A DNA stretch of 64,000 nt from Eutreptiella sp. 'Long Island Sound 2002' (GCA_964036045.1 OZ038378.1:48856001-48920000), one strand, 5' to 3'. Counted from the stretch's first letter, positions 5,326 through 53,599 are shown. The notes: generated by a model from the sequence alone, not told the origin. Translations and numbers: made by a program.

Positions 5326-5629
5326 CCCACTTTCAGAGACCATAAAAAGGCGCGCGCGATACAGGCAACGACGGAATCCCCCCAGCCAGAATTACAGGTC
5401 CAGGTCCAGCAAGAGAGGAGAAGTCCATAGGGACTTGGTCGGCAGAATAGCGCTCCTTCTGCTGAGACCAAGCGTAACGCTGAGACCGCCGTGGTAAGGT
5501 GGGTCAAGCTGCCAAAGACATGGGAGACAGTTGATCCGGAAGCATTTGTATGTGTATTGAATTTTTCGGATCTCTTTGTTGAGGAGCGTCACCCTATAAA
5601 TCCGCCCAGCAATCATAATTGTGGGCACA

Positions 5630-5990
5630 GGGAACTTGTCTTTGAGTGCCTGGTGCAGTTTTCAGCTCATCTGAAACTGCAGGACCTGAAGAATTTTGTT
5701 CCGGCTGATATTGGTTGCCAGATTTTAGCTGTGGGGAGTGCTTCGTTGTTTCCTAAGGAGAGTTCGGTCGGCGCCCCCTGACCATTGCTGCTGCTCGGTG
5801 CGGGTAAATCTCTCATCCAGGGAGGAGATAAGGGCGTGCATGTAACCCTACATGTGCCTGTAATGGGCAGATAGGGTATTGCAGTTCTGAAATGTCCAAA
5901 CATGTTCGTGCATATTGCTGAAGTGGGGCCCAAAATCCTGATTGGCTCTCCATTCTTGTTCCACTACAGGTTGGCTTTTGTTCCCACTAA
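5630..5990 (+). pseudogene. Retropepsin-like aspartic protease, degenerate
   Basis: FVPADIGCQILAV resembles the D-[ST]-G-A active site; ILIGSPFL resembles the C-terminal ILG.DFL motif; located after the CCHC knuckle; frameshifted. Confidence 0.6.
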
Positions 5991-6286
5991 ACATTTTTGA
6001 ATCCCAATGGAGGATATGAAGTTTTTGAGAGCCTCCAGGGCTTATCCGGGCTCCAGATCACAGAATGCCCGTATTGTCATCAGCATTTTGAAGCGTACAG
6101 GACAGGCACGTCGAGTTTCAGGACGTATACGTTTCTCTGACCCTGTGATCACTTCAGTGTGGTGTTTTGTTTGTAATCCGGAACAACCACCTGATGATGG
6201 TGGGCGCTGTGTGCATTCACAGGCAGCGCATATTACGTCATCCATGCGCATTGCATGTGAGGGTGCGGTTTTGCTCGGCTGCGCTT

Positions 6287-6691
6287 AAGGTGCGCCGCCT
6301 ATCAGATCGGGGATTTTTACCAAAAAGAGCCACCCCAGGGTCTGCAGATATGATGTCAGGGCACCACAGGATGTTGTAATCCCTACAGATACTGTTGTTA
6401 AGGTGCCTCTGGATATTGCTGTAGAGGTACCTGAGGGTTCATATGCTCGTTTGGCAACTTGCAGCAGTTTACCCGCCAAGCGTGTGCATATTGTGGGTGG
6501 TGTGATTGACCCTGACTACCGCGGGAACATCACTGCAGGGTTTGAAAATCAGGGTGTTTTGTGAATTCCGCATTCGCCGCAGTGACACAATTGCTCAAAT
6601 TGTGCTTGAAAATATTGTTACGCCCCCTGTCGTGGAAACAGAGGAGTTGTCTGAGACAAGTAGATGCGCTGAGGGTTTTGGCAGCACTGGG
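6287..6691 (+). pseudogene. dut: Trimeric dUTPase domain, frameshifted
   Basis: LPKRATPGSA[G]YDVRAP (motif 1), ARLATCSSL (motif 2), GGVIDPDYRGNI (motif 3), DTIAQIV (motif 4), RCAEGFGSTG (motif 5), all in order. Confidence 0.93.
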
Positions 6692-7710
6692 TCAGGGTCT
6701 CAGGACACATTTCTTCTTCAGAAAAATTTTGACAATCAAACTAATCTATCAGACATACACACACCAAAACACACACACATGCATGATACTGTTGTGGGAT
6801 CTGATTCTTTGATGAATAGTCTGATTGGTGTGTTGTGTACCCTTTGCAACCTCTTCGCTACAAAATCTGGAAGTGGAGTCCCAGTAACTGGAAGTGGAAT
6901 CCCAGTGTCCGTAAGTCCTGAATGTGGAAGCTCAGGAACCGGAAGTAGAAACGCGGAATCCAGCAGTCTTAAGAGTATAAAATCAGGCACCGGAAGTGGA
7001 ATCTCGGTTGCAAATGACCCTCGATGTGGAACGCCAGGCCCTGGACGTGGAATCCCAGGTAACCAGGCACGAAGTGGATACCCGGATCTACACACGGTGT
7101 TACAACCGTTTACGGGACTAGAGGTACCCAATAACCTTGAACAGGTCAATACGGCATTTAAGGATTCGTTACAGGGACGTGAGGTCCCGCTTACACAGAT
7201 GGGGATTTTTTCGTAGGTGTTGAACATGGTTCACCGGGTGGTACGGGGGTTGTGTACTCCAAGGTTCACCCTCTTTCTACATCTACAAATACACTATCAC
7301 CTGTACAAGACGATTCCCACGCAAACTGTGTGTTGAGTGCTGTGTTGGATGTTGATGATGTAATATATGATGAAGAACACACTGTTTTTTGGTCAGCTCT
7401 GGAGGACCAGACAGTCAATTCTGACCCTCCCCCCCCCCTTCTGTGAGTCTTACGCCCCTGATCATTTTATTGCAGGGTGGAGTATCAGAGAACCACTGAT
7501 TATTGAAAGTCTTCGGTGCTGAAGCAACAGGCATTGCCCCCCAGTGATGCGAAGTGATTTGAACATGGCCTTGCGGCTATGCATTTACTGACCACAGACA
7601 GGGCCATTGACCCCTCGTTTCCCCCTAAGAAAAACATTTTTCACTTGTCTTCTCTCTCTGATGTTGCCCGTCGTCAGGCCATCATCAGAAGCAAGAAGTC
7701 AATACCTCGG

Positions 7711-13361: not shown

Positions 13362-14299
13362 CGCTGAAGTGCCCACCAGCACCGCAGCACCAAACAGCCA
13401 CCACTAGCGCACCCCAACGAAGCACAAACGCAACAGCCAAGCAGCTACCACCACGATGGGGAACGCCACAGGGGAGGTTCTAAGCAGAACGGGGGCGGAA
13501 GCAGCCCCCAACACAGTCAGCTAGCCCAATAGGCCTCCCGGCACCGTAACGGCCATAGCGGCGCCCGCCCTCGCTGAGCGTCTGGAGCTGAAGCCCACAC
13601 GCCGTGACTTATCAGCCGTAAAAACTACGCGCCAGACTGCAGCAGGGTGCAGGACGGCGGCAGCACACCCACAGGGGCCAACGCTACCCCAGACTCTGGC
13701 TGGGCTGTGCTGCAAACGCCCGACACAAACTGCGAGACCGGCCGCTGCGACGCCTTGCAACGAGGTGGACACAGTGGCCGACTCCGAGGGTCACAAGCCG
13801 CTCATGCCAAGGAATCCTGGGACCGACCAGGAGGCACCACCGAAGGACAATGGTACCAGAGTGTCCTTGCCACCGGCGAAAACACTGAGGGGACAACCCG
13901 CCTAAGACACGCCTGCCAAGACCACAGAAACGGGGGAAGAGCAGGGCCAGAAGATAGCCACTGCCCACAACAGGCTACAGTGGTTACCCTTTTTGACACA
14001 GGGCAACCTTTCAAGCCCGGCCAAGGCTCCTCACTCAATGCCATGACGGGTCCGGGTTGATGTTCATCGAAGGACAGGTGCAATATTTACAGACTGGGAC
14101 AGCTTACACCCATGCTGGACCTGTTCGGAAGTTTGTCGTTGGGTCAGGACTCTGGTTCTCTGATGAGGGAAGGCTCACGGAGAGGGGGGAGGGGATCGTA
14201 ACTGTTTGGGGGGGCAGAAAATGAAGAAAGAGGTGATTCTTTGGGTTACATCTGGCGGGTAACTTGGGCTTCTGACGGCTTCTGACGGCTTCTGACGGC

Positions 14300-29893: not shown

Positions 29894-32028
29894 CTTGGCG
29901 CCTTTTTTTTTTTTTTTCAGGCATGGCGGTCCCCCGCCCAAGACTACACAAATCTGCTCAACTGCGAGGTTCCTCGAAGGACAGCCGCTATTTACAGCAA
30001 AACAGGGAAGTATTCAGGCATAAGGTGTCGATGACACTCTCCAAAAGGAAACCATAGGCTTAGGCCCGATCTGCTGAGTTGCTGTGGGGCTCCTACAATT
30101 GCATTTGTGTGGATAAAATCACTGAAGTTGTTTCAGTGAAAACGTAAGTTGTGCTGAGGTGAAAGGAAAAGAGGGAAGCCTAAGATGTAATGGGATTGAC
30201 TAGTTCTCTGTTGACTGAATGGTTCTGATTGGTGGACAAAATAAAGGAGGTTGATGTCGAAAAAGGGTTTGACAGGACAACATTGGGCCAATACACAGGC
30301 AGTGCACCAGAGCAGACATGCATGGGATCAATGGACGAAGTAAAACAGACAGAGTTATTCAGGTCCCTGAGTTCTCTCTTGCTGCAATTTATCCAAGTGC
30401 TTTCCCAATCTGTATTTGAATGTCCTTACCAGTAAGTTGGCCATGTCCGCTGAGTATGGGTGACGAACAGGGGCGAATGTGGTGGTAGTCCAGTCCCATG
30501 ATTCTTGAAAGACGTCAACATATTCTTCGGCTGATTGCAGTGTCCTTTCCAGTTGCTTGAGAAGTGGGGGATCTTTTAATTGGAAGTCTGATAGCGTGAC
30601 CTGAGGTGGAGAGGTCGATAGAGTAGAAGAACTCTGCAGGTGTGGTAATGCATCGGACAGAGAATCACTGTCGGTTTCTTCAGAGGAGTGTGTATCCTTA
30701 TCCTCTTCACGGCTTTGAAGTGATAAGCTTTCGTCGGCAGAGCTTTCTTTCGGCGCGTTCTCTTCAGGGACCTGGAGTGATGAGTGTTCCTCGCCGGCGT
30801 CGGCGTGCGACGTATGCGTATCTGAGGAGTGTTCTTCGATGGAGTCGGACTCGTGGTGCGCTGCGAGAGATTCTTGGTCGCTCTTGTCGTTGTAGATCCG
30901 AACTTCGGGCAGTGCATTGAATTCTGGATCGTTGCTTTCATCGAATCCTGTCGTGTGTGATGATTGAGCCGTGTTGTCTGCGAGTTGGGCTAGTGCGGGG
31001 TTGTCTGTTTGCCGCTTTGGGGCTTCTTTGCGGGATACTTGACTTTTAGAGTGGATGGTGAGTGGGTTTTCTGAACGGTCTCTGTCATTGCATAATATGC
31101 TGGCGTAACTCACGCTGGGTTCGGTGGGTCGGTGTGATACATTTTTTGATTGAAGAATTGTAGGCGGCGATGTTTTTGTTGTGCTTGATTGTTGTGCTCG
31201 GAGGCAACGTGCTTGCCGACAGGGAAGGCAACGTAGAGGGCGGTAAAGACCTTGTTTTGTGAACCAGGCGGCTTCGTCTTCCGTCAGTTGAAACATCGAA
31301 TTGCATTCCTTGCATATGTCCGGCTTGTTAGCTGGAGATTCATGCGAAGAACTGTTGAATTCACGTTTCCGGTGGCGGATTGATTGCCAGGACTCATCAG
31401 AACCTTCGCTGACCTCTGACTCAGTGTGGCGGCTTTCGCTCTCGTTGATGTCTGGTGCATCGCTTGTTGCTTGTAGGGCGCCGCTCTTCTGCTTCTCACC
31501 GGTTGGCTGTTTAGATGGAAATATATAGCTAGTATGGTCCGTTGATCCCAGTGCATGCTTGCTGTGGGCAGAGGAGATACCTGTGCTTTCTTTTTGACTT
31601 GGATTGGTAGTTTGAGTACTGGAGTGCACGGAGGTCGGAGTTATGTGATATCTTTGTGAGAAAGTAGGTGCAGGGAGATAAGGATTGTGACAGAACTGGC
31701 GGTTAGGCGATGCGGAGGGCTCTGTGCCATGGTTGAACGAGCACGTTTTTCCGTATCGACAATTTGACGAGTGTTTGCATGGAGTTTTTGCTGCAATAAT
31801 TCGGAAATTGATATAGAATTGCAATAAGGACCAGAATTGCGGTGATTTGTTAGATTCGAACAAATTATCCAGTAGCTTCACGGCGTCTTCTTCTGCGCTT
31901 TTATTTGACTGCATCCATTTCATTGTAATCGATTTTGGATGGAAATTCATTCATTGTAGCCAGATGTCGGTAAATTGTTGCAAATTGCTGTGACCATTGT
32001 TGTAGCGCGCGCGATTCTTGGCGCCTTT
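29894..32028 (-). mobile_element. Non-autonomous poly(A) retroposon, copy 1 (~2.1 kb, single ORF, no RT)
   Basis: TSD CTTGGCGCCTTT at 29894-29905 and 32017-32028; T15 at 29903-29917 (poly(A) on the minus strand); hairpin at 29925-29938; terminal motifs shared with 57552-59657. Confidence 0.88.
30355..31950 (-). CDS. 531-aa protein: CCCH zinc finger, zinc ribbon (zf-trcl-like), acidic/Ser-rich linkers and a conserved C-terminal helical domain
   Basis: Uninterrupted ATG-start ORF; CKHSSNCRYGKTCSFNH; CKECNSMFQLTEDEAAWFTKQGLYRPLRCLPCR; motifs conserved in the paralogue at 57646-59094. Confidence 0.85.
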   Translation of the reverse strand: MNFHPKSITMKWMQSNKSAEEDAVKLLDNLFESNKSPQFWSLLQFYINFRIIAAKTPCKHSSNCRYGKTCSFNHGTEPSASPNRQFCHNPYLPAPTFSQRYHITPTSVHSSTQTTNPSQKESTGISSAHSKHALGSTDHTSYIFPSKQPTGEKQKSGALQATSDAPDINESESRHTESEVSEGSDESWQSIRHRKREFNSSSHESPANKPDICKECNSMFQLTEDEAAWFTKQGLYRPLRCLPCRQARCLRAQQSSTTKTSPPTILQSKNVSHRPTEPSVSYASILCNDRDRSENPLTIHSKSQVSRKEAPKRQTDNPALAQLADNTAQSSHTTGFDESNDPEFNALPEVRIYNDKSDQESLAAHHESDSIEEHSSDTHTSHADAGEEHSSLQVPEENAPKESSADESLSLQSREEDKDTHSSEETDSDSLSDALPHLQSSSTLSTSPPQVTLSDFQLKDPPLLKQLERTLQSAEEYVDVFQESWDWTTTTFAPVRHPYSADMANLLVRTFKYRLGKHLDKLQQERTQGPE

Positions 32029-37390: not shown

Positions 37391-40300
37391 ATCCCGTTCT
37401 CGAAAAATAGTACCCTATCAGCTTCAAGGCATCCGCTTGCCCACGTATAATATAACAAGAGGGTCTACACGGGGGGACGCCGGCCGCCCCGCGACAGGAG
37501 TGGCGCAACCTGTGAGGTTTTGCTGGCTGGGATTCAGGCTGGTGGGTGCCGTAGCTTATTTATCGACCCCCTGTAGGGGTACCCACCAGAGGCTGACCCA
37601 GGCCGTCCACCTCATCTGGCTCACATACGTTGCCCTAGCGCCCACCCTTGACCGTTACCTGCACTGATTGGCCAGCTCCCGTGGTTGCGCCTCTTCCGCC
37701 ACAGCAGCGGCCAGGGCACAGGTTCGGGCTCCACTGACGACGTGTTGAGCCTACCTATAGCATTGGCCCGCGCGTCCGCGCCCGGACCACTCTGCATGTC
37801 GCCTCTAGCGGACCACACAGGCGCCCCCCAGGAGTAAGTCGCTGCAGTGGAGACTAACTAGATTACACGCATATAGAGGGGACCACATACTCAGTGCTAC
37901 GCCGCCGCGCAGTACCGCTGTCGCTATGCCGATGCCACCTGCGAGCCGCCAGTGCACGCACCACCGCAACCGCAAGGCCATGGTCAGACGTTTAGACTAT
38001 GTACATGCCCTCAGGCACGGCCCCTCTAGTTTGTTAACGGGGCCGAGGGACTCCCCTGCAATCCCCCTGAGTTGTCAAAGGGGTCAGGGGGACACCCCAG
38101 TACCGCCATGCGACTCCGCGTTGTCCCCACTGTGCGGCTCGCCAGTACCGCCGCGTATCCCCTGTACTCCCACCATACGGACCCCAATACCGCCGTGCAT
38201 ACCCCCGTGACGCCAGTACACCGTCACCTGCAACTCCGCGTACCCCTCATGAAAGCATCTCCCAGACCGCCAGGCCATCCCAAATACGCCCACTATACGG
38301 TCCACCTGATAATCACGCCGTCGCTATTCTCTTTGCACTCTTCGCCGCTTCCGGGGCTTGCAGGCTGCTCCCGCAACCCCGTGCAAAGCGCTCAGGGGGT
38401 GTCGCAACGCATGCACCGCAGCGCCGGAGGCGATGTCGCTTGCCCCCACACAAACCTGTGAGCCCCCGGAGTATCCCGAGCAACTACCCCCATAACTGCC
38501 GTAGCCAGGTTGCCAGTAGACACCCCGGTGTCATGGGAATACCCTACAGGGGTTTGGGCCTTATTACCCTGGTCGGGACGACCCATGACACCTCACTGTT
38601 GTATGCGGCGACCCAGGGGCAGGCAGGTGAAGCAGCCCTGTCCGACCCTCATGCACGGGGGCATTACGGCTCACCATCAGGCCGGCACGACGTGTCACAT
38701 CGCGTTGGCCGTCATACGCCGCCTGCCTTTACCGCACAATCAGGCCATGAGGGCACTGCTTCTCAGGCGCCACCCCATCCGCTGCGTCCAGCATAGGGAC
38801 GGTGGCAAGAGCACCCACATTTCCCATACCCCGTCAAATTGCATTACCCCCGGCCCCTACCGCGCCGTCACCATTTCCTCCGTGATGCCACAACCAAGGA
38901 ACACAGGAGTCGCCCTCCAGAGCCGCCGACCACAGCAGCAGGATTAGGGCTGCCGTCGGCGCATCGGGGCATCCCAATCCTTCCACCCGGACGCTCTTCA
39001 GGTTACCCTGGATTGCCTTCCAGGCACTTGATGACATCTGTCCAGAGTGCCGCAGCGCCCACCTCGCCTTAGGCCACCCCCTACCGGCACGCTCCCGACA
39101 CGTCCCGCATAGTGGGGCGGGGGCACATTGATGAACCTGAACCGACCTCGTCCCTCTGCACCCGTGGCATTCCTGTGGCAGCACAGACCGTGAAGAAACG
39201 CGGCTACCATCACAACACTGCGACCACAGGTCCTGCCACACATCACGCTTCTTGGAGACAGACCAAACCACCTGCCAGCGCGCGTGCATTGGCACAGCTG
39301 AGCAGGTCGCGCCTCGCTTCATCCCACCTGGACACCGGGCGGAGTATCGGCTGTCCGCTGGACCCCACCAATAGGCTCCTAAGCAGCCGGGGCCACAGCG
39401 CAACTTTGGGGCTGCGTGTGCCATGCTTCAGGAGCTCCAAACTATATTCCCGCATGATCTGCCCGATGACATCCACCCCGTTCAGCCGCTGGCCCCTGGC
39501 GGACGCGAGAAGCAAGCGTTGTCCTCCTGCCGGAGCCTCAACGACCGCCGTTAGGCCCAGGGTATCGAGGGTGTGATGGGCATTGGCACGCACTTGGTCG
39601 TCTTCTTCAGGCAGAGAGAACATCACCACCGTGACGTTGCCCTGCGCCTTGTTGCCCTGCATTCCTGCCAGTTGCTTGGAACCAACCAACACAGCCATGG
39701 ACGGCCGCTCCGTGACCGCTAGAATGGCTCATTGTAGCTGGCCGTCATACAGCCACAACGTCCCAACGTTGAGCACGACAGCTACCGCCAGGACTGGGAG
39801 GCTGCACAGAGGCTGTTGAAAGACCGGCAGCACCTCACGAGGCCAGCCCATGACTTTCACCACAGCCGGATGGTCTGTGTACACCTGGAGCCAGGGATCA
39901 CTCTGGCCGTCAGGGCCCCTCACCAAGGTACCACTCAACATGGCCCAGGACTGCGCCGATACCACGCGGCACCACTCCCTGAATGCCACGAAGTCTCGGG
40001 CCATCCAGCAACCAATCCACTGGCTGAAGGCCTGCGCCAGTGCCGCCATCCAGTGAGGGAACAAAGACATGGCCTCCTCGTGCGCGATGTACGACCTTGG
40101 CACGAACAGCGCATGCAGCGGTGCCCTCTGAAAGGTCGCCTGCAGGTCGTTGGCGAGGCCGTGGAACGGGCTCCACAGCGGACGCCGTTGGACCCTTCCT
40201 TCCGGCGGGCAGAAGGGTGTATCACCTCACAGGAACGCGTACACCGCCCTCCTTCGATCTTGCATCGGCAGCTGCATGATCTGGCTGAGCTGATGGTTCC

Positions 40301-40519
40301 TGCGGGCATTGATATCTTCCCCAACATGGACCATGACCTCCACAAAGAGCTTGGCCTTCGCAGGTTCCGGGGGATGACTCCCGCCATCAGGGATTGCGTC
40401 CATCTGCAGCCGTGCTCCCTCCACGCCAAGAACTCCACCGCCCATTCCATCAGGGGAAGCTCCGCCGTTGACCCCACCGCACGCCTGCACAGGAGTCGTG
40501 CCACGTCCTCGTCTCGTGC

Positions 40520-40574
40520 ACACAGCAAGCGCATGTGGCAAATGTCATCCTCCGCCCCCCCCACAGAAAATACA
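40520..40574 (-). other. C-terminal CCHC zinc finger of the LINE ORF
   Basis: CIFCGG..EDDICHMRLLC, with a frameshift in a G-run. Confidence 0.7.
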
Positions 40575-41239
40575 GGAGTGGGCCGGAATTGCCACATGCA
40601 TGAGCTCCTGCCTCCATAGTCGCATGACCTGCATGGTGAATAAGCGACCGTCACGTGCCCGCAGCATATTTCTGTGCGTTGGGCCGTGGTGCACAGCTCC
40701 TAGGCGCACCGCCTCAAAGGGGCTAGCCACCGGCGTGTGGGCCCTGGTGCGCGCCGCCAGCGAGCGCCCCTCCATCCCCGTGACGAGTTGAAGGGCTTGC
40801 ATGGAGGGCACAGGCGGCTCGAGCTCTCCATCATCTCCAGGCACCAAGAGGATGGCGTGCTCCTTGGGCAGGACGAGATGAACAGGCGGGGCCATTTCAC
40901 GGGCTGCGGCAGAGTCCCGCACCACAAGCGGGACTGCTGCGAAGTGCAAGTTCTGCCGCACCACCCAATGGTGTTGCCTGCCTACTCTGCGTGGTAGCCG
41001 CCGCAGCACATCCACCATCCAGCTCAGTGCGTTCTGGTTGACCAGATGCGAGGTCCGCCCCTTGATGCCACGGTACAGGGTCTCCTGCACCCTGCGTGGG
41101 TGCGCTCCAATGATGGGGGCATCCACCACGTGCACCGTGCCCGCTGACGGGGGCGTGTGCAACAGGTATGCCGCTGCGCCGATGATCTCCGCCTCCGGGA
41201 CCGTGCGTAGGTGGCACCCGTCCACGTGGGGTTCCCGTG

Positions 41240-41620
41240 GCTGGCCGCCGCCACATTGGTGGCTTCGTCTCCCTGGGGCGACGCGTCAGACGATGTGACG
41301 TTGGTCGCCACCGGTACCCAACAGTACCGGCGGGGTTACAGGCATGCCACGTCGGAGTGGAGACTCTGCGTGACGTTTCTCAGGGACGCCGCACTGGAGG
41401 CTGTGAGCTCTGGGGAGAGGACCACCTTCCGTTGATACACCGCATGTCGCCTCAAGGCCAAGTCGCATCCCAGGATTGACTGGATGGCGCCAAGGGCTGT
41501 TGTATACTCCGCTCACCACACCGTCGTGGAGCAGGAGGTTTGGTACACCACCACAGAGCCCTGTCCCCCCGCCCCGCCATCACGCAACGACGTGACGGCG
41601 ACATGCTGATCCTGTGGCAC
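41240..41620 (-). pseudogene. RNase H-like domain
   Basis: RDGGAGGQGSVVVY, SPELTA, LHSD, PQGDEATNVAA resemble the D/E/D and GNE.AD..A motifs; frameshifted. Confidence 0.5.
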
Positions 41621-42599
41621 GTTGGACATCCGAACAACCTCCGGGACCGAGCACTCATCAGCGTCCGGACGGGGCCTGCTGGCAGAAGAAAGACGATTGC
41701 CCACTCGCCGCACCCGTGTACCGCCGCGCATGCCCAGGAGAACGCGGGCCGCCTGTGCACAACGCACAGGGGTGATGGATTTATGCCGCCCCCGGCATGT
41801 GGCGTGAGCAGTGGGACAGACGCCGGATCGTCTGCTGTCGGTAACCTTCAAAGACATCCCCCTGCAGGAACAGGAGAGCCGCCAGCGGAATGAACGGCAT
41901 GGAGTGCCCCGGGTTTGCACGGTCCGATCCTTCCTCCCTGTACCCGTCCACCACATACACGCCCCCCGTAGAGGACTGCTAATTGCGTTTGCTAGCCTTC
42001 TTGCTGCGCACCAGAGAGTCAATAGACCAGGCAACTGCAGCCGGAAGACGTCGCGGAGCCCTGTGAACCACACGTGGTCCAGATGATTGGGCCCCACTCC
42101 CGCGTGTGGAAGGTGCAGGTGGTCCTCATGACACTCCTGGAGTTGGACGGCCCACTGCCCAGGTGCAGGACAGGGGAGTCCGCATGCAGGAGGTCATTTG
42201 CGGGATGAGTCAGGGACTGTACCGCTGCGTCTGTGCAGGGGGCCTGAGAGAACGCAGATGTCTCTACCCTTGAAGACGGAGGACTGGGATGCCCACTTCC
42301 GTCCCGCCCACTGCACCTGCGGCAGATGGGCGTGCACACACGAGTACACTGACGACGGCATGAGGAGTCCTATGCGCAACGTCCCGATCTCCCGGAGTAC
42401 TCTGTCCACCCACATATTGCCAGCGTGCGTGGCAAATGACGCGGAGGTCACGAGGAACTGTCCGCACACTCTGTACTGCATGTGCATGTCTCGAAGCATG
42501 GCTCGCAGCTCAGCCTGGACCGTTGTCGACCGGTGGTGCGTGGGTTGAGCCACGGTCGCTACGACGGAGTCGTGGCAGATAACCTGGACATCCGACAGC

Positions 42600-43845
42600 T
42601 GTAATCCATAACCAGACCGCACCGCCACGTTGGACAGGTCCTTGGGCAGCTTCTGGAATTGCAGAACCGCAGCCTTGATCGCAGCATTCAGCTTGACCAC
42701 TGCTTCCGCCGTGTCCGACAGGTACGGCGCCGCGTATCGCACAATGCCTCCAACCACAGCCGCCATCACCTCATGGGGTACTGACGCCGGCCCCAGCCTG
42801 TTCTTGCACCAGCCCAGCAGAGCTTCACACCGGAGTACATGTTTCTCCTTCATGGTTGCTATCCCCCTTTGATCAAGGCGTAGACCCCAGTAGGGCATCG
42901 TGCCCTTGGCGCGTAAGCACACCCGTGGGGCTGCCGCGTTCCCCGGGTTTAGGCATACCATGATCGAATGGATGCAAGCAGTATTGGCATAGGCGCACTT
43001 GCTGACGTTGAGGGACATGCCCATGTCTGTGAGGTACTGTGCAATCGCTGCCGCGTACTCCAGCAATTGCGGCAAGGAGTGCGCAATCAACAGGAGGTCA
43101 TCACAGTACGCTTGCACCAGGGGCGCCACAGCATGGCGAGCATGTCCCTGCGCCTTGTAGGCAAGGCTCCTCAGGAGAGGCTCCAAGAGGAGGAGGTAGA
43201 GCACAGCGCTCTCCGCACTGCCCTGCCGCAGGCCCCTGTGGAGCCGAATGCTCGGCGTTGGGCCGTGCGCAGTGACGATGCGCACCAGATACCCGCAGCT
43301 GAGGGTGTGGAAGAGCCTGATCAGTTCCTCGGGGACTCCCATGTGGCGCAGGAGGAGCGCCAGCGCCCCATGCGGCGATGTGTCAAATGCCTTTGACACG
43401 TCGAAGGCCAGGACCCTGTTCTCCACCCGCCAGCGCTGCAGCCTGCGCTGGGCCAGGGAAACCAGGGCAGCCATCGTGGAGCCTGGCATGGCCCCGTACT
43501 GCCAGTCCGCAGCCGATCCCTTGCGTGCCAGGACAGCCGTGAACCTCCGCATGAGGGGGTCATGAGCATCCGCATATCTTGCTGCCCCAGCTCTATTGGT
43601 ATATATTCGTCCAGGTTGCCTGTGGCCGTACCCTTGGGCATTAGCCTGATAATGGCCTCGTGCCAGGACTCTGGGACGTCCGCACCCCGCAGGACTGCCC
43701 TGTACGCGTGCACCAGGAGCCCCCGCACTAGCTCAGCCAGCTCCGCTATGAGGGCAGCCGTGACTCGGTTGGACCCCGGAGCTTTGTCGTCCGCCACGGC
43801 CTGCTTCACGGCGTCTTTGAGGTCCTGCAGGTTGTAGTCCTGCAC
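42600..43845 (-). pseudogene. Non-LTR reverse transcriptase
   Basis: KAPGSNRV, WHEAIIRLMPKG, YIPIEL, QYGAMPG, AFDVSKAFDT, GLRQGSAESAVLY, QAYCDDLLL. Confidence 0.95.
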
Positions 43846-44669
43846 CGACCTTCATTCCTCCGGCACCCCCCGAGGGATGTGGGACCCGGACCAGCCGCTC
43901 GAAGGCCAGCAGGTTCACTGGCTGCTTGGGGTACAGCGCCTCCGAGTACCTCTTGACCTCGCTGATGACGTCCGAGGCCTTCAAGAGCACTTTCTCCGAC
44001 TCCCAGCCCAGTTCACCACGTTGATGGCAACCAGTATCGCTGCCAATCGGAGCTGCAGGTGCGGCACCCTGCCCCGCCACGAGTCGTTGATGGACCCGCG
44101 TCTGCTGCTCCGGAGGAAACCCCGCAGCTCCTCCACGCGAGTCTCTAGCTGGTGGAGCTGCTGGTCTAACGCGGCGTGCAGGTCCTCCACCGTGGCAGGG
44201 GACAGGTCGGCGTCCACCTGTCGGAGGTGCTGTAGCAAGGCAGCCGATTCCAGGGAGTGGAGCCCGGCCGTTGCCGCGTCCTGTTGCCACAGCTCATGGA
44301 CGCGCCAGGCAAGGGCTTGCCTGATTTGACAGGACCTGGGCCAGATACGCCTCCGTCACCGCCTGCCCGTACGGGTACTGCGGGTCCATGCCCGACGGCA
44401 TGCGCACTCCCGTGACCCTGGACAGGTCATCGCGGAATGCGTAGAGCAGGTCGAAGACCGCTTGCGGCTCCGACGTGCCCATGGTGGCAGTGTCCTGGAC
44501 CGACGAGAGCCACGCCCGCAGCGTCCGATCCTCGCAGGCCTTCTGCAGTACCACTGCCGCCGCCTCACGAACCCCCGGGAGTCCGGGCGTATGGCATGCA
44601 GCCTGCCTTCGGGATGCGGGTAGGCCATCCAGGTGACCCTCACCTTGCCGGCCACCGCCAGGGGGATGT

Positions 44670-45241
44670 CGAGGACCACAGGGCCATGATCGGACCCCAG
44701 CGACGCAGGGGAAAGTCTAGGCGCCAGGTGCGGGCGCTCACGCGCCGCCCATGGGACCAGTGGCGAGTTCAGCAGGAAGGAGTCCAGTCGATGCCCAGCT
44801 CTCAGGAGTCTCCTGTCCTCCTCCTCTGCCGGGCCCGCCCTGTGGAACCCACACTGTTCCCACAGGGCTTGGAACCTCCTCGTGGTGGGGTGCCACGGGG
44901 ACTCCAGCCATAGGTTGAGGTCCCCTCCGAGGAGCACGGCCCTTGTGCCTCCCGCGCCTTTGGCTGCCGCGCACATGGCCACGTCAGCCCAAAAGGATGC
45001 CTTAGACGCCCGCCGACGCTGCCTGGGCATCCAGCCCCGGGAACGCATGATACCCATGGTGACGCCACTGATTCTCTGAGTGCACCACGCCCTGGGGGTC
45101 CTGCAGGCCGGTCTCCTTGAAGAGGCCCAGTATGGCACCCTCAGCCTTAATAATGCCTGCCGCCACCGCCTCACCGTCGAGCATTCCTCGGGCCACTGGT
45201 ACGCCGTCCCCCCACATCGAGCCCTGAACGTTCCAGGACAC
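44670..45241 (-). pseudogene. Apurinic-like (APE) endonuclease
   Basis: MSWNVQG, LFKETG, LLGGDLN, RLDSFL, GSDHGPV. Confidence 0.9.
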
Positions 45242-47219
45242 CGTCGCCCGGCTTTCGGAGGCGGGGCCCCTTCACGGCTGCGCCTTTGGATCAGGACCCC
45301 CTGCCGGATCTGGATCATTGAACGGGGGGGGACCAGCCGCACCCGACGCAGGCGGCTGGCAAGACGGCCCCTGTCCCCGTGGGTCACCGCTTCAGGTCGC
45401 CGTCGCCAGCTTAGACCCGACAGATGCAGCGGCTGCTCCCGCGACCCCTCCGCCCAACGTACCTGCCCCCGTGCTCCCCGTAGAAGTCGTCGCCCCACGC
45501 TGTGCCGCAGACCCAACTGCCCCATGCCGTGCCGCCGACTGCGCCGCTCCTTGCCCTCCCACAGGGCTGGCACTCCTGGGCATCGTGAGCGCTCTAGACC
45601 TCGCCTGGGCTGATGCAAAAGGCCTTGCCTGGCCTCCTGGCATAATGCCGGCCAGCATGGCGATCGCCTGGTCCCGTTCAGCTGGATCTGCCCCATCGCT
45701 CCCGCTGAAGGTGGTCCAGCAGGGCCTGGGCCGGATGTGGGCGGGCTGGTAGTGCTTGCCAGCTTTCCACGAGCAGTGACCAGCTTCATCCAGTCGAGAG
45801 GGCAGACATTGATCACCTTCGATCCACGCTGCTCCGTGGCAAGGTCGCCCCCGAAGTGCCGCAGCACGTACCGAATGTTGGCATAGCTGCCATACTGAGG
45901 CGGGGGCTCCTCTTGGGCGGCGGCTTGGGCGCTGCCTTTAAAGCCAGCCCTGCCGCAGCGGCCGGGGTGTCGCAGGCCGAACCGGCGGCACCCCTGGTGG
46001 TGGCGGCAGGTACAGCATCCCCCCCACGGGAAACTGCTCCTCCACCCAGCAGCGCCAGGCGTCCGCGAACTTGTCCCGGTCGCCCTCGACCTTCCACCTG
46101 GACGTGGAGAACGCCCGGAGCCACGTCCCCATGTTCTCTGCCATGACCAGGCGGAGGGCATCTCCTCCGCTCTGCCGGCGGAAGCGCATCGCGGCCGAGC
46201 CTACCACAGTCCCTTGGAGGTAGAGCGCTGTGCCTCCGGCGCCATTCAGAGCACGAAGGTGCAGGGCCTCCAGGTCAGAGGGGCGGACCGTGAGCACTGT
46301 GCCCTCCCCGCGATCGTACAGGCGCAGTGCCGAGGAGTGGGGTTCCAGCGCCACTACAACCCAGCACCACGCCCGCAATACACTTTGCAGCAGTGCCAGC
46401 GAGGCTGCTGGCCTGTTTCTGGAGGACTGCGCCGCCGGTGCCCTGGGGTGGGGCGCCGCCTGAGCCTGCAGCGCCCTGCACATGAAAGCTGCATGCTAAG
46501 CTTGCCACATGTTGCTCGGGGCTACAGGCCAGACGTCCTGCCCCTGGACCTTCGGCGGTCGCGTTACCTCCACGAAGACCGCCGGCGCGTGCGGCATGTC
46601 CCCAGCCGTGCACCTGTGCGCCCTGCGCACCGGGCCCCGCTCCCTGAGGCACTTCTGAACACCCTGTAGCAGGCCGTGCCCCTGGACTGCTGCCTCCTGG
46701 GCCGGCACATGGTGACGACGACCAGTTCCAGTCCCGCTGCTTCCGCCGGCACACAGGCCCAATACTCCGCCCCTTCCGACACCACCAGTCTCCCCATATC
46801 CGCCATGCCAACTGTATGGGTGGGAGGCACGCTTTCCACCTGCAGCACCCGCTTGGCGCACTCCTCCCACAGCTGGGGGGCATACATCTGCTGCTGCTGC
46901 ATCATGTCCTGCACATGCTGCAGGGATACTGTCATCAGCATGGACGCCCCCCCGTTCGCCGCCGCCGCCAGAAACAGCAGGGCATGCTGCCTGTGCGCGC
47001 CGGGCAACCCCACGTTGTGCGGGACGTCCGCCACGTCCAAGGGTGCGCGGGGCGCTGGCAGGGCATACAGCACCGCCGCGGGCAGCTCTCCCAGGGACGG
47101 CAGACGCACGATGGGCCCCATGTTCCTGTTGAGGACAACCGCTGCCACCAACCGCCTGTCCAGTTTGGACAGGAGACTGCCCGATCTCGGCACCCTGAGA
47201 AGGGTACCGAGGGCGGAGA

Positions 47220-47700
47220 TGAGGGCGCACACACCAAAGTCCTTGTCGTTGCCAGCTGGCTGCTGCACCTGTGCTGTCTGGGCCGTCACCAGCAGATGCT
47301 CTGGACCCAGCCACCCCGCCCTCTGGCCCCTGGCTGCCATGCGCATCGTCTGGATCGCCATGTCTCATCCGTGCGGCCACTGGAATGGGGCTCCCGACAC
47401 CACAGGTCGGTCCAGCGGGTCCACGGTCAACCGGTATGTCAGGGGCCAGAAGGTGGTGGGCCGTCCAGTGCTGCATGCTCGCCGTCTCCGACCGGTCAAG
47501 GTACACCGCCTCCGAGTGGCCCAGCTCGACGTACCTCGCAATGAGGAGAACAGCTGGTGTTTGGTCGTGCCCCTGGCCCTCCCAAGCCTCCCTCGGGAGC
47601 ATCACAGCGTGGGGGGCCAGGCAATGCACCACGTCGGCTGCCAGGGCGACCACGTTGTCGCTGAGCTCCAACCCATGGTCTGCGACCACCAGGAAGTGGT
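47220..47700 (-). pseudogene. Ulp1/C48-like cysteine protease domain
   Basis: LELSDNVV; LLIARYVELGHSEAVYLD (TCG is one change from TGG: GHW); VQQPAGNDKDFGVC (TTT is one change from TGT: DCGV). Confidence 0.7.
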
Positions 47701-48694
47701 GCCTGGGCGTGGAGTAGAAGCGTTCCAGGGCGCCACTCAACTCAGCTGGCGGGGGAGAGGCGTCTCCGCGGTCCCGCACCCAGGGGAGTGCGCCCGGGCG
47801 ATGCCGCCCTGCTTCTCCTCACCAGACCGCAGCCCTAAGGGTCAGCAGGTTGCGCCAGACGGCTCAAGCGATCGGATCGCCCCAGGGCTGAGGCCTTTCG
47901 GCACCCCATTTGAGGACAGCCACGAGCACATGCGTGGTCAGGGGCTCCGCCGTGAGCAGCAACATCATCCCCACGTCCGTCTCAATCAGCGTAACCTGCG
48001 GGGCAGTGAAGACGTGGCCATCGGTCTCACGGACCGCCACCCATTCCCACAAGACCGCCACCGTCTCCCAGCTGGGGTGGCTCGTCCTCCTGGGCAGGAC
48101 CACCACCGGCGAGCATGGGCTGTTGGCGGCCCATACGCGCCATTCCACCCCTACCAGACGCTCGTGGCCAGGGGGCAGGAACGCTTGGGGCCAATGGTCC
48201 GGGAGCTGGCGATGGACGACGGTCCACATATCAGCTCCGTCAGGCCGCATGAAATGGAGTCCCTCCAGGATGTCCCTTTCCACAGGACTGGGGAGGCGCG
48301 CAGTGCAAACCTCCAGTCCCTGACCCAGGCGTAGCCCTGGCCCCTCGGGATCCCCCAGCAGCAGACCTCCGGGTCCGCGGCCGCAAGGCGGACCGCCACC
48401 GCAGGAAGGTGCAGGGAGACAGTCCACGGCTGGACGGAGACGGGCTCGTGCGGGAGGTCAGCGCAGGCCGCCACAGCACTGCCATCCCTCGCCCAGTGGA
48501 GCGCCCTGTCCCAACACTGCGCCCATGTACAGGGTGCTGTTGGCAACAACCAGGACAGGTACGTCATGACCGCCCTAGCCTGCCACTAGCATGGGTCCAT
48601 GTCTGCAGGATGTGTGTGCCAGCTGCAAGCCCACCCCACGTTGGCCTCCTTGACGGCGACCATGTCCCTCTACGGGACCACCGGGAACGGGAAC

Positions 48695-49570: not shown

Positions 49571-49809
49571 CCATCCCTCTGTGAGTGCGTCGTTTTTCTG
49601 TGCTGTGTTGTTTCTGTTGCACCTCTGTCCTTGGGCGCGGTCCTGTGTTGCTGTGCTGTGCCGCTGGCGGTGTGTTGTGTTGTCCGTCCTTGTGCGCCTT
49701 GTGGTGCCTCTTGTGCCGTGCTGTGCTGTGCTGTGCTGGCATGCCTGTGCCATTTCTTCCTGTCCTCTGCTTCTTTGCCTCTCTGGCGCTGGCTGGTGCC
49801 CTTTGTTGC

Positions 49810-52075: not shown

Positions 52076-53599
52076 TTGCTGCCTGTTGTCTCTGGGTGTT
52101 CGCTGCTGGGGCTGGCTGTCAGGTGTTGTTGCCTGGTGCTGTGTTGCGGCGTCAGTGTCCTTGGTTGGCTGCCTTGTCTGCAGCACTGTGGTGTGGTGTG
52201 GCTTGCCGCTGTGTCCTGCTCCCCTGTGCTGTGTGCTGTGCTGCTGTGTTCCCGTATGGTGCTGTGCTGTTGTGCTCTGCCGCGTTTTTTTGCTGCCGCT
52301 TGTGCTTGTTGTTTCTTTCTTCCTTACCTCGCTGACCTTCGATGAATTCGTATCATTGGTCAAACATGGTTAGCCAAGACCGTACCTCTCGTCTCACTGG
52401 TGCTCACTGGGCCGTGGCGCCAGATAGAAAAAAAAACATAAGTAAAACACAACGAAAAAACTCCCTGAATAGCTGAATTTAAAGCCAACTAGCATAGAAA
52501 ACAGGTAGGCAAAGACATGCGACGCGAAAGACGGGAAATTGTGACGGAAAATCTTTCGAGCTTAAAAAGGTGAACCTAAAGCTCTGTAAGCGCCATAATA
52601 AACCTACGAGAAAACAGCCTCCCGACTTGCGCGTAAAACTCCAAAACATTTTCCAACACGTTACGCCCCTGCACTCGCTCCCTCTCGCCCTCCTTTCTTC
52701 TCCATGTACCTTCTCCTCCCGCTTGTGCCCCACCCTCGTCGCATTTCCCCCCCATTTTTGCTGGAGGCACCAAGACTGATAAATGTCAAAAACACGATGT
52801 AAATATTCTGATCGCTTCAATTCTCAACAACGACACCACATCATCACCAACGGCGGGGAGCAAGTAAGATGACAATGGTTACACTGTCTAGCTGCTCGAG
52901 GATGTGTTGGGTTGTGTATAATTTCATTTTCAAAAACAAAAAGAAAGAAAAAGCATTGTTGCAGGTTTTGCAGGGGTTTTTGAAGACCGCCAATGGTGAG
53001 TTAGCAACCGAGGCATAATTGCATTTCTCGACCTTTAGCATGTTCACGCACTGCACATGCAAACAACATGTTTGACACACGCAGTCTCCAAAGCTTGCGC
53101 CTCTTTAATTCCATGGAAGATCACCCTCCTGTGTTCTGTGTTACAAATGCACAGCAAACAAATGATATGCCAAAGAATGAGAATTTGCTCTGTCTTGCAG
53201 ACAAATAACCGCCTTACTTTCCTGCCGCCTGTTGTGCCTATATCAGCCATCTCAACGTGGACTGCTCTTCTACTAGGGCTCCTCCAGCTTCGAGGGACTC
53301 GTCATCCCCCATACGCGTAGGCGTGGCAAACACTGAAGCAAATGCGCCCATTAAGCCTACCAATCTCTTCTTACGGGGCCTGCGGGCGTGAACGGAGGCA
53401 CCACACGAGGGTTTGGCCAGATTATAATTCCCGCCCTTCTATCATTCATCTGAGTTGCCAAGAAAGAGAAAGTCACTACCATGTCATTTGTGGGGCACTT
53501 GATCGAGGCAATGTCCCCCCTATTCTTTGGGCCGTAATGAAGACTATCAATTGACAATTTTGACTACACTTTTCAAAGTAACTAGGGGTATAACTGTAG

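Follow-up and report, generated by a model that had tools for sequence, protein, structure and literature searches.

The window analysed here, a stretch of 64,000 nucleotides from the euglenid alga Eutreptiella sp. 'Long Island Sound 2002' (GCA_964036045.1 OZ038378.1:48856001-48920000), harbours two related insertions, the first of which occupies positions 29903-32016 on the minus strand. This 2.1-kb element contains a single uninterrupted ORF (30355-31950, minus strand) that runs from ATG to stop and encodes a protein of 531 aa. A run of 15 T on the plus strand (29903-29917) represents the poly(A) tail, and the direct repeat CTTGGCGCCTTT is found at 29894-29905, next to the poly(A), and at 32017-32028, at the 5' end of the element; the same duplication was recovered by an automatic search as AAAGGCGCCAAG in element sense. 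Since the last three T of the repeat overlap the T-run, the target-site duplication is 9-12 bp long and the tail comprises 12-15 A, whereas the preliminary description, which gave 12 bp and 15 nt, had counted those three bases twice. A Pfam search revealed neither a reverse transcriptase (RT) nor an endonuclease, the only matches being zf_Tbcl (PF13451, E 5.7e-5) and a weak zf-CCCH.

The 5' UTR (31951-32016, minus strand) starts with a CG run (AATCGCGCGCGC), holds the head motif ACAATGGTCACAGCAA (31985-32000) and has no spliced leader. The 3' UTR (29918-30354, minus strand) is 437 nt long and ends in a terminal module (29918-29938, minus strand) consisting of a 5-bp GC hairpin (GGCGG-GGGA-CCGCC) followed by AUGCCUG, with a conserved box, GCGGCTGTCCTTCGAGGAACCTCGCAG, lying further upstream (29960-29992, minus strand). 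In some subfamilies an extra hairpin, CACTGAAACAACTTCAGTG, is located about 233 nt from the end. The proximal part of the UTR is not conserved between subfamilies (44-59% identity, the random level), while the last 75 nt are 73-93% identical among six of the eight tails compared; the remaining two subfamilies (that of the second element and that of locus L163) have diverged tails, 50-62% identical, which keep only the hairpin. The stem of the hairpin is retained in 13 diverse tails, although the covariation rests on only two pairs with compensatory changes, and the 102-nt tail folds no better than shuffled sequences (z = 0). No Rfam family was matched at E≤1.

The second element (57566-59645, plus strand) is a decayed member of another subfamily. 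It starts with the head ATCACAATGGTCACAACAA, retains ORF remnants at 57646-58593 and about 58789-59091 in one frame with a frame-shifted middle, and ends in the tail hairpin GGCGGGAAACCGCC (59613-59626) and a tail of 13 A (59633-59645). Its target-site duplication, AAGGA(C/T)GTAGGGCT, is represented by AAGGACGTAGGGCT at 57552-57565 on the 5' side and by AAGGATGTAGGGCT at 59644-59657 on the 3' side, with one mismatch, the first two A of the latter copy overlapping the tail. Homology between the two elements is detectable at the protein level only (26% identity, tblastn E 1e-10; family HMM E 7e-55). All motifs listed in the preliminary description are kept by the second element, but it is not intact, since two compensating frameshifts introduce five stops between about 58,594 and 58,790.

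According to the AF2 model, the 531-aa protein is mostly disordered, with three confident folded modules. The first is a putative CCCH finger (31729-31779, minus strand; C58-x5-C64-x5-C70-x3-H74) preceded by a helix (aa 37-55). This spacing is conserved in most members of the family alignment and the region is modelled with a pLDDT of 80-89, yet the finger scores only 13.5 and 18.5 bits against the Pfam cut-offs of 20.5 and 29 (PF00642 / PF18345), and the local fold matches to the TIS11d, CPSF30 and MEX-5 fingers are weak and not significant. The finger is followed, in a disordered stretch, by the motif H88-N-P-Y91 (31678-31689, minus strand), which takes the form HNPY, HDPY, HQPY or HEPY in most family members compared and HSPY in two, the tyrosine being nearly invariant. 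The second folded module (31186-31338, minus strand; C213, C216, C241, C244; pLDDT 91-95) is a treble clef of the PF13451 type preceded by a W-x-S/T-V/I-basic motif, and corresponds to the zinc ribbon of the preliminary description. The window's protein scores 23.4 bits, just below the gathering cut-off of 24, whereas the protein of a 540-aa subfamily exceeds it (30.4 bits, E 3.7e-7). A search with the family profile retrieves many small PF13451-like proteins matching this segment, at about E 1e-7 to 1e-14. The third module is a C-terminal three-helix domain (30376-30603, minus strand; aa 450-525; pLDDT 93-97), the most constrained part of the protein. A Foldseek search against the PDB returned nothing at E≤0.001, a wide structural search (VIA) gave only generic helical-bundle matches with Z<6 for the C-terminal domain, and a feature-based search of the ESM Atlas with aa 440-531 yielded no usable hit. 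A word-index protein search found only two clusters, both from an assembly of the same organism.

To determine whether these insertions belong to a family, relatives were sought throughout the genome. Of 4,509 first-look candidates 82 were scored, and many copies were found to have open frames of 531, 540 or 573-723 aa. In 18 of 20 full-length relatives a flanking repeat of 7-18 bp was present (15 of them 9 bp or longer), each different from the others, together with a poly(A) of 7-23. Truncated copies (loci L022, L025 and L026), as well as very short ones, have duplications of their own; copies start at reference positions 143-943 and down to about 110 nt from the end, and some lie inside other transposons. 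The tail 18-mer occurs 1,268 times in the genome against 0-1 for the reversed control, and the head 16-mer occurs 132 times against 4 on the forward strand (0 on the reverse) for its control; sampling of the tail sites was limited to 18. On contig 1, 10 of 19 heads have the tail 1.97-2.12 kb away, one at 1.5 kb, one at 381 bp and none at 4-15 kb. The 381-bp head-plus-tail copy lacks the ORF, hence the latter is not strictly required in cis for a copy to insert. No RT was found downstream in any of the eight loci from six subfamilies that were inspected (among them L032, L033, L035, L161, L162 and L163), and every copy checked encodes the ORF alone. No run on record as RNA was found to hold the element; the four sequencing runs compared with it are DNA-like contigs, and the depths in one of them (run X2; about 45 in the flank, about 700 in the body and about 42,000 in the tail) give only a rough copy ratio.

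The family is large, with hundreds of copies in the genome, and old, though still young-looking. At least six subfamilies, each with many open copies, share only 27-32% protein identity. Between the 531-aa subfamily and the subfamily with 60% identity, dN is 0.27 and dS 0.68 (dN/dS about 0.4), while for the subfamilies with 28-32% identity pN of 0.52-0.54 was obtained against pS of 0.75-0.84. In the C-terminal domain dN/dS is 0.18. Meanwhile, the only comparison possible over the treble-clef segment gave 0.76, on few sites and against a dead copy, and within the young subfamily, where substitutions were counted against a majority-rule reference of 12 ORF copies, dN/dS is 0.68, mostly reflecting neutral decay after insertion.

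The search for an RT donor led to a candidate, a complete and apparently active 9.55-kb APE-RT-RNase H LINE, designated here LINE-P. Two loci (L185 and L170) together form a full-length LINE-P with a 14-bp duplication and an intact ORF2 of 1,589 aa (RVT_1 2.4e-29, RNase_H 8.6e-6), which is 33% identical over 1,551 aa to an ORF2 with an APE domain. Of 30 copies scored, 24 have an intact ORF2, and all four copies on contig 1 have the tail 18-mer 1.22-1.26 kb downstream. In a blastn comparison the last 35 nt of LINE-P are 94% identical to those of the first element (E 5e-10), and a 35-nt match spanning the box shows 83% identity (E 4e-4). The 5' end and the ORFs of LINE-P, however, are unrelated to those of the retroposon. 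At least three other unrelated non-autonomous families carry the terminal hairpin, and one of them, the L037 element, the box as well. In contrast, neither a shared tail nor a shared ORF was detected in the window's own LINE (37900-48560, with RT and APE). A 10.8-kb spliced-leader LINE (loci L038-L040) ends in A10 with a GATAG duplication, but has no box, hairpin or homologous ORF, and the LINE at locus L165 (intact 1,585-aa APE-RT-RNase H ORF2) has a poly(A) and a different GC hairpin. Cross-referencing of the best RVT_1 hits with the tail sites gave nothing, and an exact-pattern scan of metagenome contigs returned only chance matches, none of them followed by poly(A).

Taken together, the observation made in the preliminary description holds, apart from the overlap of repeat and tail. 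Its interpretation, an old and diversified family of protein-coding non-autonomous retroposons under purifying selection which supplies its own RNA-binding protein and borrows the RT of an APE-type LINE, is supported in every part that could be examined, and neither of the outcomes that it had named as contrary, few copies traceable to an intron-bearing gene or independent deletions of ORF2, was seen. Two refinements are needed, namely that the analogy drawn with HAL1 is only functional, and that the HNPY motif coincides with the trypanosome MKT1-recruitment motif, which suggests what the protein does. The analysis itself demonstrates the marks of target-primed reverse transcription (duplications, poly(A), frequent 5' truncation, insertion into other transposons), a layout common to the subfamilies (a CG-rich head, one ORF, and a 3' UTR ending in a box, a small GC hairpin, AUGCMU and poly(A), with the exception of the diverged tails mentioned above), purifying selection on the ORF, and the presence of the same box and terminal hairpin in LINE-P; the remainder of the model, including transcription, translation, RNA binding, MKT1 binding and mobilisation by LINE-P, is inferred. 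In this view, an ORF2 protein of the LINE-P type would recognise the shared 3' module on the retroposon RNA and copy it into the genome in trans, as stringent LINEs do for their SINEs. The element would be transcribed from its own internal promoter, because full-length copies start at one fixed base and carry no spliced leader. Its protein would act on its own RNA, to which the CCCH finger, and perhaps the treble clef, would bind, while the H-N-P-Y motif would recruit the host complex of MKT1, PBP1 and poly(A)-binding protein, stabilising the polyadenylated RNA, promoting its translation and thereby raising the supply of template and protein for retroposition. The C-terminal helical domain and other short motifs (LP-x-LQSSS, NQF-x-x-L) may contact further partners.

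We put the probability of this reading as a whole at roughly 0.7, though its parts are not equally secure. That the elements form a non-autonomous retroposon family with a selected gene is close to certain, and LINE-P or a close relative is the likely RT donor, even though the partnership rests on a shared tail only and at least two other poly(A) LINEs of this genome, the spliced-leader LINE and the L165 type, could mobilise poly(A) RNAs without it. It is somewhat more probable than not that the protein is an RNA-binding factor needed for the spread of the element itself. The involvement of MKT1 is tentative: H(N/D)PY is necessary for MKT1 binding in T. brucei and is found in many CCCH and PUF proteins (PMC3985637), and a two-exon MKT1_C match lies at one locus of this genome (C13:41.76 Mb), but a motif of four residues is short and MKT1 binding has not been shown outside kinetoplastids.

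Of the alternative explanations, mobilisation through the poly(A) tail alone by any active poly(A) LINE, as L1 does for Alu and processed pseudogenes, with the conserved tail serving in 3'-end formation, RNA stability or binding of the element's own protein, is the least improbable, though still unlikely. Several poly(A) LINE families coexist in the genome, the duplications begin with A's, which fits poly(A) annealing at a T-rich nick, and two subfamilies have diverged tails, while the thermodynamic signal of the tail is unremarkable. On the other hand, the presence of the module in LINE-P and in unrelated non-autonomous families is the classic signature of tail-dependent recognition, the module is kept while the rest of the UTR is randomised, and both the spliced-leader LINE and the L165 LINE lack it. 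It is also unlikely that the ORF is a captured host gene, that is, the mRNA of a ZC3H-type RNA-binding protein fused to a LINE tail, which either rides along or acts mainly against the host, for example by titrating MKT1 or disturbing silencing. The order of putative CCCH finger, HNPY and serine-rich region does mirror that of host ZC3H11-type proteins (PMC3985637), and the protein does not resemble known ORF1 proteins. However, no intron-bearing or single-copy parent appeared among the scored matches or in 1.84 billion representative proteins, and a spliced leader, unlike in the mRNA-derived retroposons of this genome, is absent. Long-term purifying selection across the subfamilies shows that the protein benefits the lineage of the element, which fits either a role in cis or one against the host.

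An origin of the HAL1 type, in which a LINE lost its ORF2 once long ago or repeatedly and the remaining gene is that LINE's ORF1, is very unlikely, although RT-less elements encoding only an ORF1-type protein do exist (HAL1, PMC5753468; HeT-A) and the 3' end is shared with a LINE. The family HMM finds nothing in LINE-P, the window's LINE, the spliced-leader LINE or the L165 LINE, the sense frames of LINE-P contain no CCCH, treble clef, HxPY or CCHC, and the heads differ. Moreover, no open frame among the 82 scored matches exceeds 723 aa, no head-tail pair on contig 1 lies 4-15 kb apart, and since all subfamilies share one layout, repeated independent deletions are excluded. Finally, ordinary processed retrocopies or a dispersed host gene family, which an intronless ORF with poly(A) and a duplication at a single copy would fit, are refuted for practical purposes by more than a thousand tails, 132 heads, the fixed termini, the shared LINE tail, the truncation series, the insertions within other transposable elements and the deep diversification with every subfamily multicopy; no exon-wise match was seen among the 82 scored hits, which are only part of the 4,509 candidates.

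Non-autonomous retroposons are usually either non-coding (SINEs, RIME) or crippled LINEs (HAL1), whereas here a parasite of a LINE has for a long time kept a gene of its own, which is unrelated to the genes of the LINE and looks like a host-type post-transcriptional regulator. If the protein recruits MKT1, this shows how a mobile element can plug into the mRNA-stability machinery, on which Euglenozoa rely because they regulate genes mostly after transcription, and it would extend the HNPY-MKT1 system beyond kinetoplastids. A bolder possibility, which we regard as doubtful, is that the family represents a new class of mobile element, a 'coding SINE', in which a gene unrelated to any LINE rides on a borrowed LINE tail, has been kept by selection through deep diversification, and encodes an adaptor that uses the Euglenozoa-specific H-N-P-Y motif to hijack the MKT1-PBP1-PABP complex for the element's own RNA; this would be the first case of a transposon exploiting this pathway. 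Euglenid transposons are almost undescribed, full-text searches having found no paper on euglenid non-LTR elements, and LINE-P with its several tail-sharing dependants offers a clean natural system for studying 3'-end recognition by a LINE reverse transcriptase in a protist.

With regard to its protein, the element shares with PF13451 ('probable treble clef domain') four cysteines in two CxxC pairs about 24 residues apart and the F...W/F-F/Y...G-L..P-x-R-C..C-R pattern, but that family consists mostly of small, uncharacterised, largely prokaryotic or metagenomic proteins with 1-3 repeats, and the match therefore says little about mechanism. With trypanosome ZC3H11 and other MKT1-binding RNA-binding proteins (PMC3985637) it shares the order of an N-terminal CCCH finger, which is putative in the element, followed by H(N/D)PY and a serine-rich disordered region, and the consensus (H/N)(D/E/N/Q)PY fits most family members; those proteins, however, are products of single-copy host genes with C-x8-C-x5-C-x3-H fingers and without a treble clef or C-terminal helical domain, the similarity shown being confined to the motifs. 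Among mobile elements, ingi/RIME and L1Tc/NARTc of trypanosomatids belong to the same phylum (Euglenozoa) and likewise involve non-autonomous partners of APE-RT-RNase H LINEs with poly(A) tails, but RIME and NARTc are non-coding internal-deletion derivatives that share both ends with the LINE. HeT-A of Drosophila telomeres (PMC5537684) is a non-LTR element that encodes only an RNA-binding (Gag) protein, essential for its own targeting, has no RT and is thought to use that of TART/TAHRE; its Gag, in contrast, is homologous to the Gag of its relatives and has CCHC knuckles, and the element is telomere-specific, whereas here insertion is dispersed and the protein combines a putative CCCH finger with a treble clef. 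HAL1 of mammals (PMC5753468) is also an RT-less non-LTR retroposon which encodes one protein and depends on the ORF2 protein of a LINE, yet it is an L1 that lost ORF2, with L1 ORF1p as its protein and L1 sequence at both ends, while in the present case the gene and the 5' end are unrelated to the partner. In SINE-LINE pairs with stringent recognition, such as tRNA-derived SINEs and their partner LINEs (PMC5786205 for the principle), a 3' tail is shared with an autonomous LINE, and here too only the 3'-terminal 130-170 nt (box, hairpin, short spacer and A-tail) are shared, other unrelated non-autonomous families carry the same module and many copies are 5'-truncated; unlike a SINE, which is short (<700 bp) and non-coding, the element is 2.1 kb long, has no tRNA, 7SL or 5S head, contains T-runs that would stop Pol III and carries a 531-aa gene kept by selection.

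On the minus strand of the window lies a 2.1-kb unit (element 1) with a 531-aa ORF (30355-31950) that runs from ATG to stop without interruption and is followed by a 437-nt 3' UTR and a run of 15 A (29903-29917, read as T on the plus strand). The unit is bracketed by the direct repeat CTTGGCGCCTTT (29894-29905 and 32017-32028), and since three bases of this repeat overlap the A-run, the duplication is 9-12 bp and the tail 12-15 A. A Pfam search revealed no reverse transcriptase or endonuclease, and reported only PF13451 zf_Tbcl at E 5.7e-5 and a weak zf-CCCH. The second unit (element 2; 57566-59645, plus strand) has a 14-bp duplication with one mismatch and 13 A, and is recognisably related to the first only at the protein level (26% identity, E 1e-10; family HMM E 7e-55). 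It is, however, a dead copy, as two frameshifts put five stops into the frame. With that one caveat, the preliminary description, which had reported two RT-less units sharing layout and protein motifs, was found to be correct.

Searching the 2.28-Gb genome with the 531-aa protein gave 4,509 first-look candidates, of which 82 were scored. About 20 copies are 93-96% identical, most of them with open 531-aa frames, whereas other groups sit at about 60%, at about 30% (many open 540-aa frames) and at about 27% (573-723 aa). Twenty full-length relatives share the same first and last bases, and 18 of them have a flanking repeat of 7-18 bp, each different (15 of them 9 bp or longer), together with a poly(A) of 7-23. 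Copies truncated at the 5' end also have duplications of their own. The tail 18-mer GGCGGGRRACCGCCATGC occurs 1,268 times in the genome, against 0-1 for the reversed control, while the head 16-mer occurs 132 times, against 4 on the forward strand (0 on the reverse) for the control. Hence, most copies are 5'-truncated, as expected for LINE-type reverse transcription. Read depth yielded only rough copy ratios.

A profile search of 1.84 billion representative proteins found about 25 further family members. All those checked come from one ENA assembly, which is evidently derived from the same organism, because one ORF is identical to a genomic copy. Three of these subfamilies (28% identical to the protein of the window) were examined at the DNA level, and each again consists of head, ORF, UTR, tail and poly(A), with its own duplication and no RT. 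In one ENA contig (L161), the CCCH retroposon lies next to an uninterrupted 478-aa eEF1A-type ORF with GTP_EFTU domains (5356-6792, minus strand) and a tyrosine-recombinase ORF (Phage_integrase; 1808-3283, minus strand). On contig 1 of the genome (G000:C1), 10 of 19 heads have the tail 1.97-2.12 kb downstream, one at 1.5 kb and one at 381 bp, and none has it 4-15 kb away, so that an autonomous version with these termini does not seem to exist. The head and tail motifs lying only 381 bp apart on the same strand (G000:C1:99373844-99374240) probably represent an ORF-less mini derivative of the CCCH retroposon.

Within the young subfamily dN/dS is 0.68, which mostly reflects neutral decay after insertion. 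Between the 531-aa subfamily and the 60% subfamily, dN is 0.27 and dS 0.68, giving a ratio of 0.40, while at 28-32% identity synonymous sites are saturated (pS 0.75-0.84) and pN is 0.52-0.54. By region, the ratio is 0.18 in the C-terminal domain and 0.41 in the disordered middle; the treble-clef segment has 0.76, though on few sites and against a dead copy. The keeping of 440-720-aa frames open in every subfamily over this depth of divergence is itself strong evidence that the protein matters to the element.

The last 75 nt before the poly(A) are 73-93% identical between subfamilies whose proximal 3' UTRs align at the random level only (44-59%). The tail consists of a box (GCGGCTGTCCTTCGAGGAACCTCGCAG), a spacer, a 5-bp GC hairpin with a 4-nt loop, and then AUGCMU and the A-tail. 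The stem is kept in all 13 diverse tails compared, and two pairs show compensatory changes, yet the evidence for structure is modest, since the stem is short and the 102-nt tail folds no better than shuffled sequences. A second conserved 3'-UTR hairpin, CACTG(A/T)AACAACTTCAGTG, is found in the window at 30135-30154 (minus strand) and at equivalent places in element 2 and in the family loci L035, L028 and L162, about 230-370 nt from the end in five subfamilies; it is absent from three other subfamilies and from the LINE described below. Two other retroposon-like, GC-rich 3' ends in the window, at 13990-14090 (minus strand) and 52330-52437 (plus strand), carry a related box (TG[TA]CCTTCGATGAA) about 60-90 nt before a short A-run, and the ORFs upstream of them have no Pfam match. 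Full-length copies of the CCCH retroposon start with a CG run followed by ACAATGGTCACARCAA. They carry no spliced leader, unlike several LINEs of this genome, one of which, a 10.8-kb element (segments L038-L040; G000:C1:178756000-178785999, minus strand), starts exactly with a euglenid-type spliced leader (ACTTTCTGAGTGTCAATTTTTTTCG), ends in A10 and is flanked by GATAG. The lack of a leader suggests an internal promoter, although this is an inference from sequence alone.

To search for the RT donor, 18 of the 1,268 tail sites, all without a head, were sampled. About nine were 3' ends of CCCH retroposons, many of them only 100-150 nt long and each with its own duplication, four belonged to a different element with a longer 3' UTR, four to a family of about 210 nt, and one was a short copy headed by a leader-like sequence. 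Extension of one of the four with a longer 3' UTR (segments L185 and L170; G000:C1:13626903-13636450) revealed a full-length 9.55-kb LINE, designated LINE-P, with a 14-bp duplication, a 1.2-kb 3' UTR and an intact 1,589-aa ORF2 of the APE-RT-RNase H type containing RVT_1 (2.4e-29) and RNase H (8.6e-6). This ORF2 is 33% identical over 1,551 residues to the ORF2 of another LINE, which has an APE domain. The last 35 nt of LINE-P are 94% identical to element 1 (E 5e-10) and the box is 83% identical (E 4e-4), whereas its head, its 5' ORFs and the rest of its 3' UTR are unrelated. The family HMM finds nothing in LINE-P, and its sense frames contain no CCCH, treble clef, HxPY or CCHC; the 5' ORF region of this copy is split over several frames and has no Pfam match. 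The genome holds at least 30 copies at 95-96% protein identity, 24 of them with an intact ORF2, and, judging from these intact frames alone, the LINE is probably active. All four copies on contig 1 have the tail 18-mer 1.22-1.26 kb downstream of ORF2, and at one tail site (L179; G000:C1:98693683-98695412) three tail motifs spaced 856 bp apart form a tandem array of LINE-P 3' ends together with their flank. This is the kind of evidence on which SINE-LINE partnerships are assigned. It makes LINE-P, or a close relative, the likely source of the reverse transcriptase, and also shows that the retroposon is not a HAL1-like deletion derivative.

Other elements share the tail as well. A non-coding poly(A) element, present in the loci L037 (4093-4858, minus strand; about 765 bp, bounded by an 11-bp duplication) and L022 (300-1045, minus strand; a copy sharing its tail), ends in the same box and a covarying hairpin (GGGGG-GCAA-CCCCC, then ATGCATC), and only its last 100 nt or so resemble LINE-P (77%). 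A third tail-sharing family is represented by the tail sites L178 and L180 (G000:C1:75666595-75667855 and 116932660-116933920), and also by L176 and L183; L178 and L180 share about 210 nt at 93% identity and end in the hairpin with a GGGGAA loop plus ATGCATC and poly(A), and very short truncated copies have their own duplications. Finally, the tail site L167 (G000:C1:5511490-5512750, minus strand) contains a retroposed copy of about 110 nt that begins with a spliced-leader-like sequence (...CTATTTTTTTCG), ends in the same terminal hairpin and is flanked by a duplication.

AlphaFold2 modelling with the family alignment predicts three confident small modules in an otherwise disordered chain (53% of residues below pLDDT 50), namely a helix plus a C-x5-C-x5-C-x3-H finger (aa 37-77), the treble clef (aa 205-255) and a three-helix C-terminal domain (aa 450-525). 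In fold searches the finger gave only weak, short matches to the TIS11d, CPSF30 and MEX-5 fingers, and the C-terminal domain had no informative match. The treble clef is a genuine relative of PF13451, but this is a family with no known function. A weak tblastn match (E 0.03, 42% over 26 aa) of the treble-clef segment of the 540-aa subfamily lies in the window at 49665-49742 (minus strand), in a GC-rich region full of overlapping ORFs. Meanwhile, a 329-aa protein from another organism (P0088, encoded by L166, a 2.2-kb contig of NCBI GCA_006365095.1) combines a CCCH-like finger with two PF13451 treble clefs, and may be a cellular relative of the domain pairing.

Several short motifs are conserved in the disordered parts of the protein. 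H-x-P-Y lies 10-20 residues after the finger and is present in most members, with a nearly invariant tyrosine; W-x-T/S-V followed by basic residues precedes the treble clef, LP-x-LQSSS precedes the C-terminal domain, and NQF-x-x-L occurs in several subfamilies. H(N/D)PY is the motif by which T. brucei ZC3H11 and many other CCCH and PUF proteins bind MKT1; a PY-to-AA change abolishes the interaction, the derived consensus is (H/N)(D/E/N/Q)PY, and MKT1 with PBP1 and LSM12 stabilises the bound mRNA (PMC3985637). ZC3H11 has the same order of finger, HNPY and serine-rich region, and one MKT1_C locus with two exon matches above the cut-off is present in this genome.

The preliminary description had inferred an old, diversified family of protein-coding, non-autonomous retroposons that is kept under purifying selection, supplies its own RNA-binding protein and borrows the RT of an APE-LINE, and this interpretation is supported, the RNA-binding role being predicted only. 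What the sequences show directly is the marks of retroposition, the common layout without an RT, the long retention of the ORF and the 3' end shared with LINE-P, whereas expression, the transcription start, RNA binding, MKT1 binding and mobilisation by LINE-P are all inferred. In this view, the protein of the retroposon would bind RNA, presumably its own by cis preference, and would then recruit the host MKT1 complex, which would protect and translate the poly(A) RNA that the enzyme of LINE-P later copies. The recruitment of the MKT1 complex remains tentative, and we give it about one chance in three.

A full-text literature search, which did not extend to Repbase, found no description of euglenid non-LTR elements. 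Within Euglenozoa, the known non-autonomous partners of LINEs, RIME and NARTc, are non-coding. Functionally, the element as inferred here combines two known ideas, the tail parasitism of SINEs and the arrangement of HAL1 and HeT-A, in which an RNA-binding protein of the element's own is used together with a borrowed RT. It is nevertheless neither a SINE, from which it differs in its size, in the absence of a Pol III head and in being coding, nor a HAL1, since it does not have the ORF1 and both termini of the parent LINE.
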